Shown in pieces: positions 26,401 through 34,435 of a stretch of DNA of 61,340 bases. The stretch's first letter is position 1. The number at the start of each line of letters is the position of its first letter. The DNA comes from Aplysia californica (Eukaryota). Position numbers and translations under genes: made by a program. The notes below the pieces were generated by a model. The model ran no database searches. It had not been told where the DNA came from and saw nothing but the letters and a program-made list of their open reading frames with translations. The stretch spans positions 1,495,825 through 1,557,164 of the forward strand of contig NW_004797358.1 of NCBI RefSeq assembly GCF_000002075.1, given 5' to 3'.

Positions 26401-29400
26401 TCTAGCACAAGTCCCTCCTGATTGGTAATGACAGTGCGGGGGCCAATAAAACCAAAAGTAGTGGCATTACACAATAAATTGTAATGTGTGGCTGGGAGGA
26501 TTGCCCCTGATTCCCCTTCCCCCACAACCTCCTCTTCCTCCTTCTCTAGTCTTGTTCCCCCCCCCCCCCCCCCCCACACACACACACAAATCGATCACAA
26601 CCACAGGAACATTATAAATATCGGCAATGACAGACGTAAGTCTGAATAAACCAGAGACATTGCAGTAGACCTTCAACTAAATAAGTTGTCAGACAAGTCT
26701 TGCAGTAGTCTGTCATCTAAACCAGAAACATAGTAGTAAACCTTTAACTGACCCAGCATCCGTTCTTTTTAGAACTGGGAGGGGCAAACTATGACCTGTG
26801 CCTGTGGTTCAAGTACAACCATCCTCAGGTAGTGTGTGGCCTACAGAAACATTTGGCGAATTTAATCTTTAACTTTAACAAAATCTTTTTATGAAGTGAC
26901 AACATTTAACATTTAAATATAAATTTATACTCGAGCAGACACTAGCTTTGGTAGTGTTGAATATTACAATGAACCACTTTATAGTTAGAGTAGACCCATT
27001 TCGCATTTTCCCAATACAGTGGAACTCGGATTCAATGAAAGGAGATGGATTCCCCAGTTTTTTTCCACTTTAAAATCAATAAAAATAACCCAGATTCAAC
27101 AAACACTTAATTCAGCAAGCTCGGATTCAACGAAGTCGTTTCCAGGGTGAACAGCGACCGCAGACATTAGAGGAATATCATTCAGTAGCTACAAGACTAC
27201 ATGTATGTGCCATCATTCGTATCTGTTTCTTGTGTCCATTATTATTATTTCCCTTATTTGTCAATCATATTCATCTGCTTTATTTCTGTTCCGTTTCTGT
27301 CCCAGTCATGCATCGTCTGACGTATGTCTTCATTGTGCTTGATTAGCAAAGTCCTCGTCAAGTCACAAAGAGTGTTGACATTTATTTATGAAGACATAAG
27401 AGATACATCATGACCACCATCCCTTGCCCTGCCCCGAGCTGCGACGTGGAGTGGCCTGCATCTACGCCGACTGAGGTGTTGACACGCCTCATTGACATCC
27501 ACGCCACCACAGCCCATGCAGCACGAGCGAATGCACCGACTGCGGCAGCCAAGGCTGAGAAAGTGCGATGCCCTGTTGTGTCTGGATCCGGAACGAGCGA
27601 GGCGTGGTCATACTTCACCCAACGGTGGGCCGACTACAAACAAGCGACTCGCCTCACTGGTGCAGACATCGTCTTCCAGCTTCTCGAGTGCTGCGATGAG
27701 TCGCTACGAAAAGATCTCACAAGGACATTCGGCGCCCTAGCCTCCAGCGAAGAGGACACTGTCCTAAAGAACATCAAGAGCCTGGCGGTGTGCCAGGAAA
27801 ACATCATGGTAGCACGGGTACAGCTACATCAAATGAAGCAAGACCGGGACGAGCCTGTCAGAGCCTTCGTCGCCCGCCTCAGGGGCCAGGCTGGGGTTTG
27901 CAACTTCAAGATAAAATGCCCTAGGTGCTCTCCAGATGTCCACGAATCCAGCGTGGACTATAGCGATGTGATGATTCGTGACGTCCTCATCCGAGGTCTA
28001 ATTGATGAGGAGATCCGACTCGACATCTTAGGTGAGTCAAAGCAGGACATGTCCCTTGAGGATGTACTCTGCTACGTGGAGGGGAAGGAGAGTGGCAAGA
28101 GGTCAGCCAGTCGCCTCGTTGAAATCTGCTCCTACACCACGGCAGCGGCCACAAGCTCCTACAAGCGCAGTGAGAAACTCGGCATACAGGGCAACTTGTT
28201 CCACAGTAAGGGCCAAGTGTTCCTCTGCAATTACTGTGGCAAACTGGACCATGGGAATGGTAGACAGGAATGTATGAAGAAGTGTCCGGCATTTGGTAAA
28301 AGATGCACCAGGTGTGGCCTATCCAATCATTTCACCAACCTCTGCCGACAGTCGTCACGGAACAGCAACCCCACCAATGCCCTGGATGACTCTGCTGCCG
28401 CCTTTGACAGTCTATGCGGTGCAGATTCCGCCACACCGGTGTCTAATGCGCACTCTGTATCCCTAGACCATCATGTATGCGAGTTTTGCAGGGCATGGGA
28501 GAAGCGAGCATCCGACCCTCAGCCTTTTGTGAACGTCACCATCCAGGCAGTGTCTTCAGACGCCCAATCTCTCGGTTTCCCGCCACCTCTGAGAGGCAGC
28601 ACCTCTCCCGTCAAGTACCAAGCTATGGCAGACACTGGGTGCCAGTCGTGCCTGGCGGGCGTAGCACTCTTGACTAGGATGAGCCTCACTCGCCGTCATC
28701 TCCTCCCTGTCAACATGAAGATGACAGCTGCGAATCGTGGGGCCATTGACATCATCGGAGCCCTTCCCCTTCGTATTTCTGGAACGTCTCCGTCCAACAC
28801 CTGGCTGGTGACCCACCAGATGGTGTACTTCACCACATCCACTGGTCGGGTGTTCCTAAGCAAGCAAACCTCTGTGGCTTTGGGAATAATTCCTCCTAGC
28901 TTTCCGACCATTGGTGCCACCAGTGCAGCCATCAATTCGAAGGACAAGCCGGCTTGCGGGTGCTCACACCGCCAACCACCTCCGCCACCACCAACCTCCC
29001 TCCCNNNNNNNNNNNNNNNNNNNNNNNNNNNNNNNNNNNNNNNNNNNNNNNNNNNNNNNNNNNNNNNNNNNNNNNNNNNNNNNNNNNNNNNNNNNNNNNN
29101 NNNNNNNNNNNNNNNNNNNNNNNNNNNNNNNNNNNNNNNNNNNNNNNNNNNNNNNNNNNNNNNNNNNNNNNNNNNNNNNNNNNNNNNNNNNNNNNNNNNN
29201 NNNNNNNNNNNNNNNNNNNNNNNNNNNNNNNNNNNNNNNNNNNNNNNNNNNNNNNNNNNNNNNNNNNNNNNNNNNNNNNNNNNNNNNNNNNNNNNNNNNN
29301 NNNNNNNNNNNNNNNNNNNNNNNNNNNNNNNNNNNNNNNNNNNNNNNNNNNNNNNNNNNNNNNNNNNNNNNNNNNNNNNNNNNNNNNNNNNNNNNNNNNN

Positions 29401-32400
29401 NNNNNTCCAACCGCTTAACCGACATGCAGCGCGGGAGACTCACCACACTCAGTCTCCCTTCCACCAGGCCCGCAAAGTGCCACCCCACACAAGGAAATCG
29501 GAATTTGACGCGTGGAATGGCTACCATAGCATCGCTCTTGCTGAAGAGGATAGACATTTGACGACGTTTATCACCCCATGGGGTCGTTATCACTATCTCG
29601 TGGCCCCTCAAGGCTACATATCATCCGGGGATGGATACAGCCGACGCTTTGATGAGATCGTTGCTGACTTCCCCCACAAAACCAAATGCAATGACGACAC
29701 CCTTATGTGGTCAAACTCTATTGAGGAAGCCTTTTTCCAGGCCGTCAAGTCGTTTGACCTATGTGGCACCAATGGCATCATACTCAACCCATCCAAGTTC
29801 CAATTCACCAAAACTAGGGTTGAGTTTGCAGGTTTCGAAATAACTCCCTCCACCGTGCGCCCATGTGCCCACTACCTGGAGGCCATTCGACATTTCCCCA
29901 CACCTCGGAACATCACTGACGTCAGGAGCTGGTTCGGTCTCATCAATCAGGTATCCTACTATGCCTTCGCTTCCGCTGAATGAATGCTCCCATTCTGGAA
30001 AGCCCTGAAGCCGGGAAAACGCCTCGAATGGACAGAGGAGCTCGACCGTCTGTTTGAATGGTCAAAGGAGGCCATCATCAATGAAATCCACCAAGGGGTT
30101 GAAATATTTGACAAGAAGAAACCAACTTGCCTAGCCACCGACTGGAGCAAGGATGGCATAGGCTTCTGGCTCTTCCAGAAACATTGTACATGNNNNNNNN
30201 NNNNNNNNNNNNNNNNNNNNNNNNNNNNNNNNNNNNNNNNNNNNNNNNNNNNNNNNNNNNNNNNNNNNNNNNNNNNNNNNNNNNNNNNNNNNNNNNNNNN
30301 NNNNNNNNNNNNNNNNNNNNNNNNNNNNNNNNNNNNNNNNNNNNNNNNNNNNNNNNNNNNNNNNNNNNNNNNNNNNNNNNNNNNNNNNNNNNNNNNNNNN
30401 NNNNNNNNNNNNNNNNNNNNNNNNNNNNNNNNNNNNNNNNNNNNNNNNNNNNNNNNNNNNNNNNNNNNNNNNNNNNNNNNNNNNNNNNNNNNNNNNNNNN
30501 NNNNNNNNNNNNNNNNNNNNNNNNNNNNNNNNNNNNNNNNNNNNNNNNNNNNNNNNNNNNNNNNNNNNNNNNNNNNNNNNNNNNNNNNNNNNNNNNNNNN
30601 NNNNNNNNNNNNNNNNNNNNNNNNNNNNNNNNNNNNNNNNNNNNNNNNNNNNNNNNNNNNNNNNNNNNNNNNNNNNNNNNNNNNNNNNNNNNNNNNNNNN
30701 NNNNNNNNNNNNNNNNNNNNNNNNNNNNNNNNNNNNNNNNNNNNNNNNNNNNNNNNNNNNNNNNNNNNNNNNNNNNNNNNNNNNNNNNNNNNNNNNNNNN
30801 NNNNNNNNNNNNNNNNNNNNNNNNNNNNNNNNNNNNNNNNNNNNNNNNNNNNNNNNNNNNNNNNNNNNNNNNNNNNNNNNNNNNNNNNNNNNNNNNNNNN
30901 NNNNNNNNNNNNNNNNNNNNCGCCCATACCATCAATTCCGGGAGTTCCTCACGACATTTGATGGTGTCATCCTGTACCACGACTGGGTAGTTATACCCCC
31001 GCCGCTCCGTGAGCGAGTCCTCCAGTCCTTACACTCTGCTCACCAGGGTGTGTCCCAAATGTGCTCTCGAGCTGAGGCCTCGTTTTTCTGGCCCGGCATA
31101 ACCCCGGCCATCACTGAAGTGCGGGCCCACTGTCAGTCATGCAACCGCATGGCACCTTTCCAGCCGAGTGCACCTCCCATCTCTCCAATAGCACCGGCAT
31201 ACCCATTCCAATGTATTGTGGCAGATTATTTTCATCATCGAGGCCACAGCTACCTAGTTGCAGTCGACAGGTACAGTAACTGGCCTATCGTTGAAAAAGC
31301 CTCCCATGGATCCGCCGGCCTCGTTGCCGCGTTGCGTCGCATCTTTGTCACGTATGGCATCAGTGATGAACTGACATCGGACGGAGGCCCGGAGTTCACG
31401 TCCCTGGCAACCTCCACCTTCCTTCGCAACTGGGGTGTCCACCACAGGATCTCTTCAGTCGCCTTTCCTCACTCTAATTGTCGCGCTGAAGTTGGAGTAA
31501 AGACAGTGAAACGGTTGATCACTGACAACACGGGTGCACAAGGATCTTTAAACACTGATAAGTTCCAGCGCGCAATGCTGCAATACAGGAACACTCCTGA
31601 CCGTGACACCCACCTATCCCCAGCGATGAGTATGTTTGGACGTCCAATACGGGACTTCATCCCCATCCACCCAAGGAAGTATCAGCCTCACAGTACCTGG
31701 CATGAAACCCTTCTGTCGCGAGAGGAGGCACTGAGGAACCAGCACATGCGCACCGCTGAGCGCCTCTCTGAGCACACTCGCATCTTACCTCCACTCGTCG
31801 TCGGTGACTGTGTGCGCATACAGAACCAAACGGGAACCCACCCGACCAAATGGGACAAGACGGGCATTGTAGTGGAAGTACATCAATTTGACTAGTACGT
31901 CGTTTGAGAGGATGGCTCTGGCCGCGTCACCCTTCGCAACAGAAAGTTCCTCCGCAACTACATGCCTGTGGTCCCGTGCTCACCACTGACGATGATCCCG
32001 GGTGGCACCTCACCACCACAGCCAGCGCCTCAGAATATTCACCCCCCCCGAGCATACCAAGTCCAGCGTGACCTCGTCGCCCTCTCCTTGCCCGGATCTA
32101 CCACAACCAGCTGGCATTCAGGACCCCCAAGCACACGATCCACCGATGCCTACTGTCCCCGAATCCGGGCAAGAATTAGCGCCTGATCCACGCCCTGCTG
32201 TCGAGACGGTGGTTCTACAACCTCAGGCTCAAGCCCCCCCGCGTGCTCTACATGTGCTCCAGCAGCACAACGCCCCTGGCATACAAGAGCAAGATGTTCC
32301 CATAAGCGTGAGCACGCCTCCAGGCGGCCCTCGGCGATCAGCAAGACTATTGGCCAGACAGAGCCCCAAGCCAATTGACTCTAAATCCAAATCTGATTCT

Positions 32401-34435
32401 GACACTCATTGATCTATCATTTGCTCTCTTAGTTTCTTTTCATAGGTCCAAGCAGACATTACCATTGTTCCTATCTCTCGTTATGATGTTCCTTGTTATA
32501 TCACCAGTATTTCTTGACATAATTACATCAGTCTTTTCTGTTCCACTCCAAAGACTTGGAGGGGGGGGCGTAGAGGAATTCATTCAGTAGCTACAAGACT
32601 ATATGTATGTGCCATCATTCGTATCTGTTCCTTGTGTCCATTATTATTATTTCCCTTATTTGTCAATCATATTCATCTGCTTTATTTCTGTTCCGTTTCT
32701 GTCCCAGTCATGCATCGTCTGACGTATGTCTTCATTGTGCTTGATTATTAAAGTCCTCGTCAAGTCACAAAGGGTGTTGACATTTATTTAGACATGGCTT
32801 CACTAATTTTTCTCCCACAACAAACTTTATCTAGATTTTATTCCCACAAACCATCCATTGTACCTGCCATCGTGAACCATTATTCACTAATCCGATAGCA
32901 TGCGACCAATCAACGGCCATCTTTCATACCAACACAAGCGTAGTTCGCATGCACATGTGTCTACTCTGGTGAGTGTCAGGATGGTGACTGTGTGTGTGTG
33001 TGTGAGTGTCCGGGAGCCATCGGTCCAGGATGGAACGTCGAAGACAAAAAGCATCACAGCCCCCTCCCCTTCCCCCCCAAGCAACAGATCAAATCATGAT
33101 TACAATGATAAGCTAGTCTTGACGTAGATCTACGTAATGAATTGTGCGCTGGTTTATGGAATCAAAAGTTACACAGCAACACAACTTTTTGGCAAACAAC
33201 AGAGATGACACAGGCGTGCCTTAGAACGTAATATAATGTCTTTTTTTAAAAACAGCTCATAATATAAGCAGGCATTCCAGGCATTACTTGTTACTTCTCT
33301 TTATTACTTGCCCAGGGCCTGTAATTATTTAGGTCTACACAAAACCTCATGTTTGCTATATATATACAATGAACACTTGGATTCAACGAGATTTTAGGTC
33401 AGGCCCGGCGACCTCGTTGAATTCGAGTTCAACTGTACAGTCCCAGCCACTATAAAAGAAAAGTAAAGTCACCTTGGGCCTAGGTCATTATGTCCATTTT
33501 TTAAAAGAGAGCAGCCCATGCCAACCATTAATGATCATAGCCCAGCAGTCGAAATGGACCCCAATTCAACTATGTTGACATTGTCCAGTTTTAACTCATT
33601 CGCTACGCCGAGCCGTGGGGGGCTGCGCGGCTAAAGTGCCGTCAGTACGCTAAGCCGCCCCCGGCGGCTCGAGAACCGACGTTCAACTTTAGCTTGGTTT
33701 CTATTCCAATCCACATATCCATGTTAAAATAAAGGTCATAATATAAAGTTGACTTCCGGGTCAAGCGTTTCCACCGAAAATCGGAAGTTTTGATTCAGTT
33801 TTGAAACACGATTTCGAAGTTTATGCGACATTGTTTAATCGCGAAGCCCAAATTATAGCCCAGACACCAGTCTTAGTACTTTTACACAACAAAATGTATC
33901 ATTATTTTGCTCATTAAAGAAATGTAGGACTCTTCTTTATAATATTGATACTACTGGACCAAATTGCCAAGGCACTGTAATTGAGAAATCAGTATTTTTG
34001 AGTGCTAGATCTAAGCCTAGATCTAAACAGTCAAAATATTTTTTTTCTCCCCAAAATCACTACTTTTTGGTGAATTTTCTCCAAAAGTACCACCCAAAAC
34101 ATGTAATGGTTTATTCCAAATGCAATTCTGAATAATTCCATATAAAATACGAGTGTTTTTTGTTTGTTTGGGATCCTTTTTTCAAAATTATTTTAAAAAA
34201 TTATTTTTTTCAATATCGGAGGTTATGATCCAAATGTACAAATATTATAGAATGAATGTAAATAACTGCTCATTTTTCAATATTTTCCTGTTCTAGATCT
34301 AGATCTATATACAGTTATTATCAGTTATGGTTATTTATAATTTATACATACCCGTGCTACACTTTCGCTTTCCGCAGCCGAACCGTAACATAATTCATCG
34401 GAAGCTAGTATGCCAACGCCAGCTGAACCTGCCAT
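8276..34435 (-). CDS. ALDH16A1: Aldehyde dehydrogenase family 16 member A1, 15 coding exons, 815 aa, predicted non-catalytic
   Basis: Exons (minus): 34435-34352, 25935-25833, 23905-23779, 23150-22972, 22287-22031, 21250-21098, 18816-18619, 17982-17884, 16990-16748, 15819-15674, 14463-14296, 12969-12765, 10480-10295, 8969-8846, 8451-8276. All introns GT-AG, phases consistent, total 2448 nt. Full ALDH fold, then a linker and a second Rossmann-type domain ([17 protein letters not shown]...[12 protein letters not shown]...[13 protein letters not shown]...NFKRTWVN...IWLPMG), the ALDH16-specific architecture. Confidence 0.95.
8846..8969 (-). CDS. ALDH16A1: ALDH16A1 exon 14
   Basis: [41 protein letters not shown]. 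Confidence 0.93.
9678..10021. mobile_element. TTAA-targeted MITE (piggyBac-like)
   Basis: TTAA|CTCACCCAGCCCTA ... TAGGGTTGAGTGAG|ATAA imperfect TIRs. Confidence 0.5.
10295..10480 (-). CDS. ALDH16A1: ALDH16A1 exon 13
   Basis: [54 protein letters not shown]...FQQ. Confidence 0.92.
11531..11610. repeat. perfect 40-bp tandem duplication
   Basis: TAAACATTAAATCAGTGGAGACAGAATATCAGAATTATGA x2. Confidence 0.9.
11760..12679. mobile_element. Tc1/mariner-type MITE, family A copy 1
   Basis: TA|CAGTCGAACCTG ... CAGGTTCGACTG|TA; subterminal ACGGAAACCTGT repeats; homologous to 42919-43805. Confidence 0.85.
12765..12969 (-). CDS. ALDH16A1: ALDH16A1 exon 12
   Basis: [21 protein letters not shown]...[17 protein letters not shown]. 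Confidence 0.93.
14296..14463 (-). CDS. ALDH16A1: ALDH16A1 exon 11
   Basis: [24 protein letters not shown]...[16 protein letters not shown]. Confidence 0.92.
14640..15200 (-). mobile_element. RTE-clade LINE 3' fragment (degenerate RT C-terminus)
   Basis: [11 protein letters not shown]...[11 protein letters not shown]...[15 protein letters not shown]. Confidence 0.75.
15674..15819 (-). CDS. ALDH16A1: ALDH16A1 exon 10 (inter-domain linker)
   Basis: [48 protein letters not shown]; GTAAGT donor. Confidence 0.88.
16748..16990 (-). CDS. ALDH16A1: ALDH16A1 exon 9
   Basis: [36 protein letters not shown]...VWVNGH...[13 protein letters not shown]. Confidence 0.93.
17884..17982 (-). CDS. ALDH16A1: ALDH16A1 exon 8
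   Basis: [33 protein letters not shown]; GTGAGT donor. Confidence 0.88.
18619..18816 (-). CDS. ALDH16A1: ALDH16A1 exon 7 (contains the degenerate catalytic-Cys position)
   Basis: [44 protein letters not shown]...AKAEGAE. Confidence 0.92.
19642..19993 (+). mobile_element. tRNA-derived CORE-like SINE with L2-like tail
   Basis: A box TGGCCTAGTGG, B box GGTTCGAATCC, core GTTGTGTCCTTGGGAAAGGCACTT...GGGTACC, (TTA)n tail. Confidence 0.85.
20339..20460 (+). mobile_element. 5' fragment of the same SINE family
   Basis: GTGGCGTCGGTAG...GTTGTGTCTTTGGTAAAGACAC. Confidence 0.6.
20819..21071. mobile_element. MITE with 16-bp perfect inverted ends (Kolobok-like)
   Basis: AATTGGTCGCTTTTAA (20819-20834) / TTAAAAGCGACCAATT (21056-21071). 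Confidence 0.6.
21098..21250 (-). CDS. ALDH16A1: ALDH16A1 exon 6
   Basis: [51 protein letters not shown]. Confidence 0.92.
22031..22287 (-). CDS. ALDH16A1: ALDH16A1 exon 5
   Basis: [12 protein letters not shown]...ALAMGNTV...[13 protein letters not shown]...KIVFAGSAS; GTGAGT donor. Confidence 0.92.
22972..23150 (-). CDS. ALDH16A1: ALDH16A1 exon 4
   Basis: [17 protein letters not shown]...[10 protein letters not shown]...GWKPY. Confidence 0.9.
23506..23743. mobile_element. piggyBac-like MITE
   Basis: TTAA|CCCTATCCGTACG ... CGTACAGATAGGG|TTAA. Confidence 0.8.
23779..23905 (-). CDS. ALDH16A1: ALDH16A1 exon 3
   Basis: [41 protein letters not shown]; TAG/GT boundaries. Confidence 0.9.
24152..24652 (-). 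mobile_element. tRNA-derived SINE, second family, (AAAC)n tail
   Basis: Minus-strand head GGGCTCTCGTGGCCTAGAGGTTAAGG, central GCACGTTATAGATCCC motif, tail GACCTTATGCAGTTGCGAGCGCCGTAAAACC + (AAAC)n; a + strand copy lies at about 41510-41742. Confidence 0.7.
25833..25935 (-). CDS. ALDH16A1: ALDH16A1 exon 2
   Basis: [35 protein letters not shown]; CAG acceptor, GTAGAG donor. Confidence 0.9.
27168..27388 (+). repeat. 5' LTR (221 bp)
   Basis: Matches 32571-32790 except about 5 substitutions and 1 indel; starts TAGAGG, ends TTTATTTA. Confidence 0.93.
27410..32412 (+). pseudogene. gag-pol polyprotein of the Gypsy element (zinc knuckles, aspartic protease, RT, RNase H, integrase), disrupted
   Basis: CNYCGKLDH...[14 protein letters not shown] knuckles; ADTG protease; [28 protein letters not shown]; RNase [11 protein letters not shown]; integrase HSAHQG..C..C, ADYF, SDGGPEF, RAEVGVK. 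In-frame stops at 29981-29983, 31893-31895, 31905-31907; C-terminal PRRSAR tail is in another frame; two N gaps. Confidence 0.9.
29005..29404. other. assembly gap (others at 30193-30920, 50829-50960, 57490-57890)
   Basis: Runs of N. Confidence 0.99.
32571..32790 (+). repeat. 3' LTR (220 bp)
   Basis: Direct repeat of the 5' LTR, preceded by [14 protein letters not shown] (32558-32568) and CG. Confidence 0.93.
34352..34435 (-). CDS. ALDH16A1: ALDH16A1 coding exon 1
   Basis: [28 protein letters not shown] then GTATGT donor; resembles the ALDH16 N-terminal YGPAPES motif and joins in frame to LWLDKH. Confidence 0.85.

Follow-up and report, generated by a model that had tools for sequence, protein, structure and literature searches.

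The comparisons described here point to a group of Ty3/Gypsy-type retrotransposons, represented by one defective copy in a 61,340-nt stretch of the Aplysia californica genome (contig NW_004797358.1; hereafter the window), which very probably primes minus-strand DNA synthesis with its own RNA in the manner of Tf1 from Schizosaccharomyces pombe. A first-pass annotation of the window had read the sequences on either side of the 5' long terminal repeat (LTR) end as a Tf1-style self-priming duplex, and this reading is now strongly supported by compensatory variation over about 40 lineages and by a duplex boundary fixed at the last base of the LTR. Below we describe how this arrangement is built, how far it is conserved and how its arms covary, as well as the missing tRNA-type site and where initiator and poly(A) motifs lie around it. 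It is a known mechanism in an apparently undescribed and widespread metazoan clade; in the literature that we searched, with most subscription journals and Repbase Reports outside its coverage, self-priming is nowhere reported for Gypsy elements of molluscs, echinoderms or cnidarians.

The element and its primer-site duplex

Within the window, TATGTCTTCAT (27323-27333), inside the 5' LTR of the element, is the exact reverse complement of ATGAAGACATA (27388-27398), with a 54-nt loop between them, and 10 of the 11 nt of this 3' arm lie beyond the LTR, the remaining one being the last LTR base, A27388. Clean 5-bp target-site duplications are present in 4/5 of the Aplysia LTR pairs compared and therefore define the LTR as TAGAGG...ATTTA with A27388 as its last base, so that the exact 11-nt complementarity proposed by the annotation, and its extension 10 nt past the LTR, could both be verified. 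The same is true of the proposed absence of a tRNA-type primer binding site: the sequence directly after the 5' LTR is TGAAGACATA, and at the verified coordinates the leader to the gag ATG (27410) is 21 nt long and starts TGA, not TGG. The element has, in other words, the two features by which self-priming elements are classed, namely no tRNA-type site and a post-LTR site complementary to its own LTR.

One LTR element, 5.6 kb long, is present in the window. Its features are as follows.

27163-27167, + strand: 5' target-site duplication GACAT, matching 32791-32795.
27168-27388, + strand: 5' LTR, 221 bp, termini TA...TA (TAGAGG...ATTTA), a direct repeat with 32571-32790, its ends set by the target-site duplications.
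27302-27306, + strand: initiator-like CCAGT with its A at 27304, a candidate alternative transcription start identified by motif only.
27323-27333, + strand: 5' arm, the proposed self-primer (3' end ...CAU, then U), exact complement of 27388-27398, kept in Aplysia copies and covarying in 39-40 lineages.
27334-27387, + strand: 54-nt loop between the two arms, comprising the remainder of R plus U5.
27345-27350, + strand: poly(A) hexamer position in the loop, AGCAAA in this 5' LTR, against ATTAAA in the 3' LTR and in the majority of the other copies.
27388-27398, + strand: 3' arm, the putative primer binding site, complement of LTR 27323-27333; its first base is the last LTR base, and an 11-nt spacer leads from it to gag.
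27410-32412, + strand: coding region of a defective copy, gag-protease (PR)-reverse transcriptase (RT)-RNase H (RH)-integrase (IN), from open reading frames and the Pfam matches RVT_1, RT_RNaseH_2, Integrase_H2C2 and rve.
32550-32570, + strand: polypurine tract (AAAGACTTGG plus a G-rich run) adjoining the 3' LTR, the same motif being conserved in relatives.
32571-32790, + strand: 3' LTR, a direct repeat, in which the 5' arm recurs at 32725-32735 and the hexamer reads ATTAAA at 32747-32752.
32791-32795, + strand: 3' target-site duplication GACAT, matching the 5' copy.

The two LTRs are 97% identical (5 mismatches and 1 gap). By its LTRs, target-site duplication, polypurine tract and PR-RT-RNaseH-IN domain order the element belongs to Ty3/Gypsy (Metaviridae); a protease DTG motif is present, and the closest solved homologue of the coding region is Ty3 Gag-Pol (E=1e-40).

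In the Aplysia genome about 15 further copies retain both arms, with only isolated single-copy substitutions, none of which is compensated at such shallow depth; more distant Aplysia families exist at 41-65% RT identity. Two small hairpins that the annotation had drawn in the loop fared differently: the second (GTCAA..TTGAC) is conserved across the Aplysia family, whereas the first (TGCT..AGCA) is private to the 5' LTR of the window copy, since it needs AGC where the other Aplysia copies and the 3' LTR of the same element read ATT. In one Aplysia copy (L012) GAAGACATA is tandemly duplicated at the primer site, and in another (L016) an insertion of ~85 nt lies directly 3' of it. A half-site resembling a cAMP response element (CRE), TGACGTA (27318-27324), adjoins the 5' arm, and nearly all Aplysia copies retain it.

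The duplex recurs with different sequences in marine invertebrate relatives

With the Gag-PR part of the element we found hundreds of related marine invertebrate proteins, the closest named one being from Aplysia californica itself (93% identical), and for several of these relatives, taken up at the DNA level, we asked whether the sequence starting at the last LTR base has a complement inside the LTR. Every assembly relative examined has one, each of a different sequence: 12 nt in Elysia chlorotica, 14 nt in Plakobranchus ocellatus, 11 nt in Mytilus edulis, 12 nt in Lytechinus pictus, 17 nt in Actinostola sp., and 15, 14 and 13 nt in the L063, L067 and L068 assemblies, respectively. A perfect duplex of 11-17 nt is thus present in 7/7 of the assembly lineages that were shuffle-tested (Aplysia, Elysia, Plakobranchus, Mytilus, Lytechinus, Actinostola and L063), the duplexes of the two further contigs, L067 and L068, having been read by eye. 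In Elysia, Actinostola and Lytechinus, where both LTRs are present, 5-bp duplications put the first duplex base on the last LTR base.

One metagenome scan contributed a further 79 loci, 57 of them with the Gag N-terminus and at least 130 nt upstream. A perfect inverted repeat of 9-19 nt in the typical geometry was found in 46/57, and 5/57 have a repeat with 1-2 mismatches, with one indel, or of 10 nt; the rest are truncated (4/57) or were left unresolved (2/57; L072 and L086). In the common geometry the 3' arm begins AT after ...TTATYT, the 5' arm ends CAT with a T next to it, and the loop between them measures 32-77 nt. Distinct arm sequences number 39 from the screen, plus that of Mytilus. 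A scan of viral contigs was blank. One locus (L085, 470-485) has an extra primer-site-type sequence (ATGACCACGGTCAC) in U3, upstream of its normal 5' arm, which may be the footprint of aberrant priming or recombination.

This recurrence decides against a chance inverted repeat. For the window copy alone the case against chance is weaker, given that the LTR is T-rich and that an anchored match of at least 11 nt arose in 32/20000 shuffles (p ~1.6e-3; the match anchored at the last LTR base and the LTR shuffled with dinucleotides preserved), less rare than the ~1e-4 estimated in the first-pass annotation yet still unlikely. In shuffles of the six relatives, however, the observed duplex length was reached only 0-5 times in 20000 each, and coincidence, the probability of which we regard as negligible, is refuted by the fact that 39-40 lineages of differing sequence share the repeat at one anchored position.

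The variety of the primer sites also bears on another alternative, in which a host tRNA, or a half or other fragment of one, would pair with them and their match to the LTR would be incidental. Half-tRNA primers are known in some Copia lineages (PMC6317226), and ARAGORN finds neither in the window nor in 60 Aplysia loci a tRNA with which the site could be compared. However, no TGG follows the LTR, and almost every lineage has a primer site of its own, even where close relatives come from one sample, each site matching the LTR of its element. Because the site varies by lineage and follows its own LTR, which conserved tRNAs cannot track, we treat a tRNA, half or fragment as excluded as the primer, or at least as very improbable.

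The arms covary under strict Watson-Crick pairing

Counting pairs from the inner end of the duplex in 39 lineages, we found Watson-Crick pairs at positions 1-11 in 38-39/39, a figure which has to be read in light of the fact that the lineages were chosen by a perfect-inverted-repeat screen, which makes Watson-Crick pairing at positions 1-9 a matter of construction; what is free of this bias is the hit rate of 46/57 together with the fixed location. Positions 1-2 are invariant (U-A, A-U) and positions 3-11 each occur as 3-4 pair types, while none of the 390 pairs that make up positions 1-10 is G-U. All 39 lineages have the same inner boundary, which falls on the last A of the LTR, an A preceded by T, and when the register is slid by 1-3 nt pairing falls to ~25%. 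Single compensated pairs separate even near-identical elements (L075 vs L076; L129). The check that the annotation had set for itself, namely whether primer site and LTR complement change together in relatives, therefore came out in favor of its reading.

An alternative is that the duplex is a structural 5' panhandle of the RNA, serving packaging, dimerisation or translational control of the gag start, with priming done by something else. It lies 11 nt from the gag ATG in the window copy, minimum-free-energy folds form it in all 39 lineages, and the case for priming by the 5' arm is itself made by sequence comparison. On the other hand, the distance from duplex to ATG ranges from 5 to 255 nt in relatives, which ties the helix to the LTR end and not to gag, and its inner boundary is exactly that LTR end, where minus-strand DNA must start. 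Moreover, the 21-nt leader offers no alternative primer site, and selection for structure only would tolerate G-U pairs and mismatches, none of which occur in positions 1-10 of the 39 lineages. With G-U absent, the helix anchored to the LTR end and no other primer site available, we consider a purely structural helix quite unlikely.

Proposed priming mechanism

We propose that transcription would start in the 5' LTR, at or shortly upstream of the 5' arm, and that the arm, lying in R, would be present at both RNA ends. By analogy to Tf1 and retroviruses, the 5' arm would fold back over the 32-77 nt loop to pair with a stretch of 11-19 nt whose first base is the last of the LTR, the RNase H of the element would cut after the conserved ...CAU of the arm, and the resulting 3'-OH would be extended through U5 and R to give strong-stop DNA, which would then transfer to the 3' R. 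Plus-strand synthesis would later copy the still attached primer and so rewrite the primer site, keeping the arms perfectly Watson-Crick while their sequence drifts. In retroviruses it is the plus-strand strong-stop DNA that copies the primer and rewrites the primer site, and on that model the strict pairing seen here may be explained by the copying itself, as rewriting by a self-primer would keep the arms complementary. If this is correct, DNA sequence would suffice to locate the transcription start of each family, because primer rewriting would make the outer edge of the complementarity mark the 5' end of the RNA.

Initiator and poly(A) motifs suggest that the arm may lie near the RNA 5' end

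Two features of the sequence agree with a Tf1-type scheme. The canonical initiator TCAGT occurs 14 times between -60 and +40 nt of the arm start, with its A at -1 to +2 in 10 of these, and in 7 lineages the A falls exactly on the first arm base, where 1.2 occurrences would be expected for the whole -6 to +2 window. Most of the lineages with TCAGT at the arm belong to one subclade, two others lying elsewhere in the tree, and in many further lineages YCAG or TTAG is found 1-6 nt upstream of the arm. In 20/39 lineages (3.8 expected) the loop contains the hexamer A[AT]TAAA, typically ~30 nt before the LTR end, which therefore puts the arm in R and makes U5 short.

Several observations weigh against self-priming as we propose it or against this placement of the start, in addition to the selection of lineages by the screen. 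In the Aplysia subclade the arm is not at an initiator motif, CCAGT instead lying 15-26 nt upstream of it (19 nt in the window copy), and base 27323 is a T after G, atypical for an RNA polymerase II start. Contigs of four sequencing runs have repeat-like depth and look like DNA, and they give no transcript starts or ends. The window copy is itself defective: its coding region has an in-frame TGA at 29981-29983, and two runs of N (29005-29405 and 30193-30920) mask portions of RT and RH/IN, the frames beyond them being not judgeable. Finally, Tf1 needs a hairpin like the U5 inverted repeat (U5-IR), and we found none beside the primer site by RNAalifold on a MAFFT alignment; a small hairpin before the LTR end does recur, its per-lineage folds averaging -3.1 kcal/mol vs -2.4 kcal/mol for shuffles, a difference statistically unsupported across the clade.

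Transcription of the window copy may thus begin at 27304 or at 27323. A start at about 27323 is favored because the complementarity stops at 11 nt, provided that the whole primer rewrites the primer site, which is an argument and not a measurement.

Two further candidates in this region were rejected. Circularly permuted 5-kb contigs, considered as a mark of the transcription start, proved to be k-mer assembly artefacts. For the Aplysia subclade the minimum-free-energy folds draw another helix, in which the leader pairs with the stretch from CCAGT to the arm, but its duplex energies are no more favorable than those of shuffles (p 0.04-0.38).

Phylogenetic position and relation to Tf1/Sushi

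In an RT-RH tree all lineages for which DNA is available fall into one 30-row group (support 81/95), which also includes two representatives without DNA and sits inside a clade that is split from the next one at 100/100. Identity to the Elysia element over RT-RH is 60-79% among the relatives compared.

The known elements closest to the clade are Tf1/Tf2 and the Tf1/Sushi group, which lack a tRNA site and in which at least 11 nt at the 5' end of R complement a site just after the 5' LTR (PMC7175516, PMC4600332, PMC6934838, PMC6317226). The clade described here likewise lacks a tRNA site and has such complementarity, and its arm may also lie at the 5' end of R. The RNA of Tf1 pairs through its first 11 nt with the primer site and is cut by RNase H between nt 11 and 12 (PMC7175516), and self-priming has been inferred for Tj1, Maggy, Skippy, Cft-1, Boty, the plant and fungal Tcn1 and vertebrate sushi (PMC4600332, PMC6934838, PMC6317226). 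Like Tf1, our element is a member of the Ty3/Gypsy superfamily with a single gag-pol frame; whereas cleavage and priming were demonstrated experimentally in Tf1, those of the present clade are predicted from sequence. It differs from Tf1/Sushi in having no chromodomain, in LTR termini of TA...TA as opposed to TG...CA, in a duplex of 11-19 nt that includes the last base of the LTR, in its marine invertebrate hosts, and in a Gag with two Cys/His knuckles and a conserved N-terminal Cys/His motif.

These differences matter for whether the clade is a chromodomain-less offshoot within the Tf1/Sushi chromoviruses, which would make its self-priming known biology with a wider host range. The identical priming anatomy and the single gag-pol frame would fit such an origin. 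However, we found neither a chromodomain (PF00385) nor SH3_Tf2-1 in four full-length members (P0003, P0057, P0022 and P0020; Pfam, E<=1), and no Chromo match in any of 26 full-length proteins of the nearest neighbouring clade (E<=0.01); the integrase C-terminal tail is, by alignment, SH3-like followed by a proline-rich stretch, so that the annotation was right in seeing no chromodomain. The LTR termini likewise speak against an offshoot, as does, as a lead only, the fact that the nearest named Atlas clusters ('K02A2.6-like', 'Ty3-I' and 'GIN1') include no Tf2. We therefore consider an origin within Tf1/Sushi unlikely. Mag-like features of the clade are weak leads only, consisting of the 'K02A2.6-like' Atlas neighbours, the single frame, the short LTRs and the two knuckles. 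That a metazoan Gypsy clade, Mag-like, without a chromodomain, with TA...TA LTR ends and spread among molluscs, echinoderms and cnidarians, acquired self-priming independently of Tf1/Sushi, and that the outer edge of the complementarity is the RNA 5' end (here 27323 and not CCAGT), is a combined proposal which we find plausible but hold just short of probable.

The disordered proline-rich tail after the integrase SH3-like domain carries a short conserved motif, PRALRAL.P.N.PGL (P0014, P0016 and P0020), located where chromoviruses have their chromodomain, and may be a targeting peptide. Wherever duplications fix the boundaries, the LTR termini are TA...TA and not the canonical TG...CA (27168-27169 and 27387-27388 in the window; L061, L065 and L066), and the LTRs of relatives start TAGAG or TATAT.

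Other comparisons and significance

In several respects the clade resembles Steamer and the Steamer-like elements of bivalves (Mag lineage C-clade), which are also ~5 kb long with LTRs of 150-220 bp, a single gag-pol frame, two nucleocapsid knuckles and marine invertebrate hosts across several phyla (PMC8905726, PMC11046912). Steamer LTRs, however, read TGTAACA...AACA and are followed by a 12-nt tRNA-Leu site, TGGTGTCAGAAG (PMC8905726), neither of which the present clade has, and MchSLE1, too, has a tRNA-type site (PMC11046912). We accordingly rejected an identity of the window element with Steamer, as its LTR is TAGAGG...ATTTA followed by TGAAGACATA and not TGTAACA...AACA followed by TGGTGTCAGAAG. 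Another parallel in priming is the plant Ty1/copia TAR lineage (Houba, Osr-1), for which self-priming was likewise predicted from sequence alone and outside Tf1/Sushi (PMC6317226), yet TAR elements belong to another superfamily, with the Copia domain order, have plant hosts and are unrelated to the clade.

A large chromodomain-less invertebrate clade with the anatomy of Tf1 would show that elements abandon tRNA priming repeatedly, or that such escape is much commoner, and leaving tRNA priming would at the same time be an escape from silencing based on tRNA fragments. To our knowledge, Tf1 is the only element in which experiments have demonstrated self-primed reverse transcription; the same has been inferred for its chromovirus relatives in fungi, vertebrates and lower plants, as well as for a single plant Copia lineage. 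The ~40 natural compensatory variants would form a ready mutational series for the duplex, and self-priming would explain why, in the genomes of molluscs, echinoderms and cnidarians, annotation pipelines based on tRNAs report 'no PBS' (primer binding site) for such elements. It also suggests a search rule, namely an LTR that ends ...TTA, followed by TG and then by the complement of an LTR segment ending CAT.

Additional observations

Elements from a gastropod, a sea anemone and a sea urchin (L061, L065, L066 and L062) are 71-74% identical to one another over RT-RH and 45-50% over Gag-PR, and host phyla are intermixed in the RT-RH tree, which together suggests that horizontal transfer may have taken place among marine animals, as has been reported for Steamer-like elements. 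Two proteins of this retroelement (P0075 and P0087) were deposited as 'MAG: Deltaproteobacteria bacterium' and 'bacterium endosymbiont of Escarpia laminata', and are probably host DNA binned into bacterial assemblies.

The N-terminus of Gag (27410-27520 in the window) has a Cys/His pattern that is invariant in 16 relatives (C6, P7, C11, H31 and H36 in P0003 numbering), is additional to the two nucleocapsid knuckles and is without a Pfam match; it is possibly a zinc-binding module. Directly upstream of the element, 27013-27155 is a very high-copy short repeat, with a contig depth of up to ~1e5 in three runs and many variant joints, within which a GAGCTCGGATTCAAC-like unit recurs, and looks like a short interspersed element or satellite into or beside which the element inserted.

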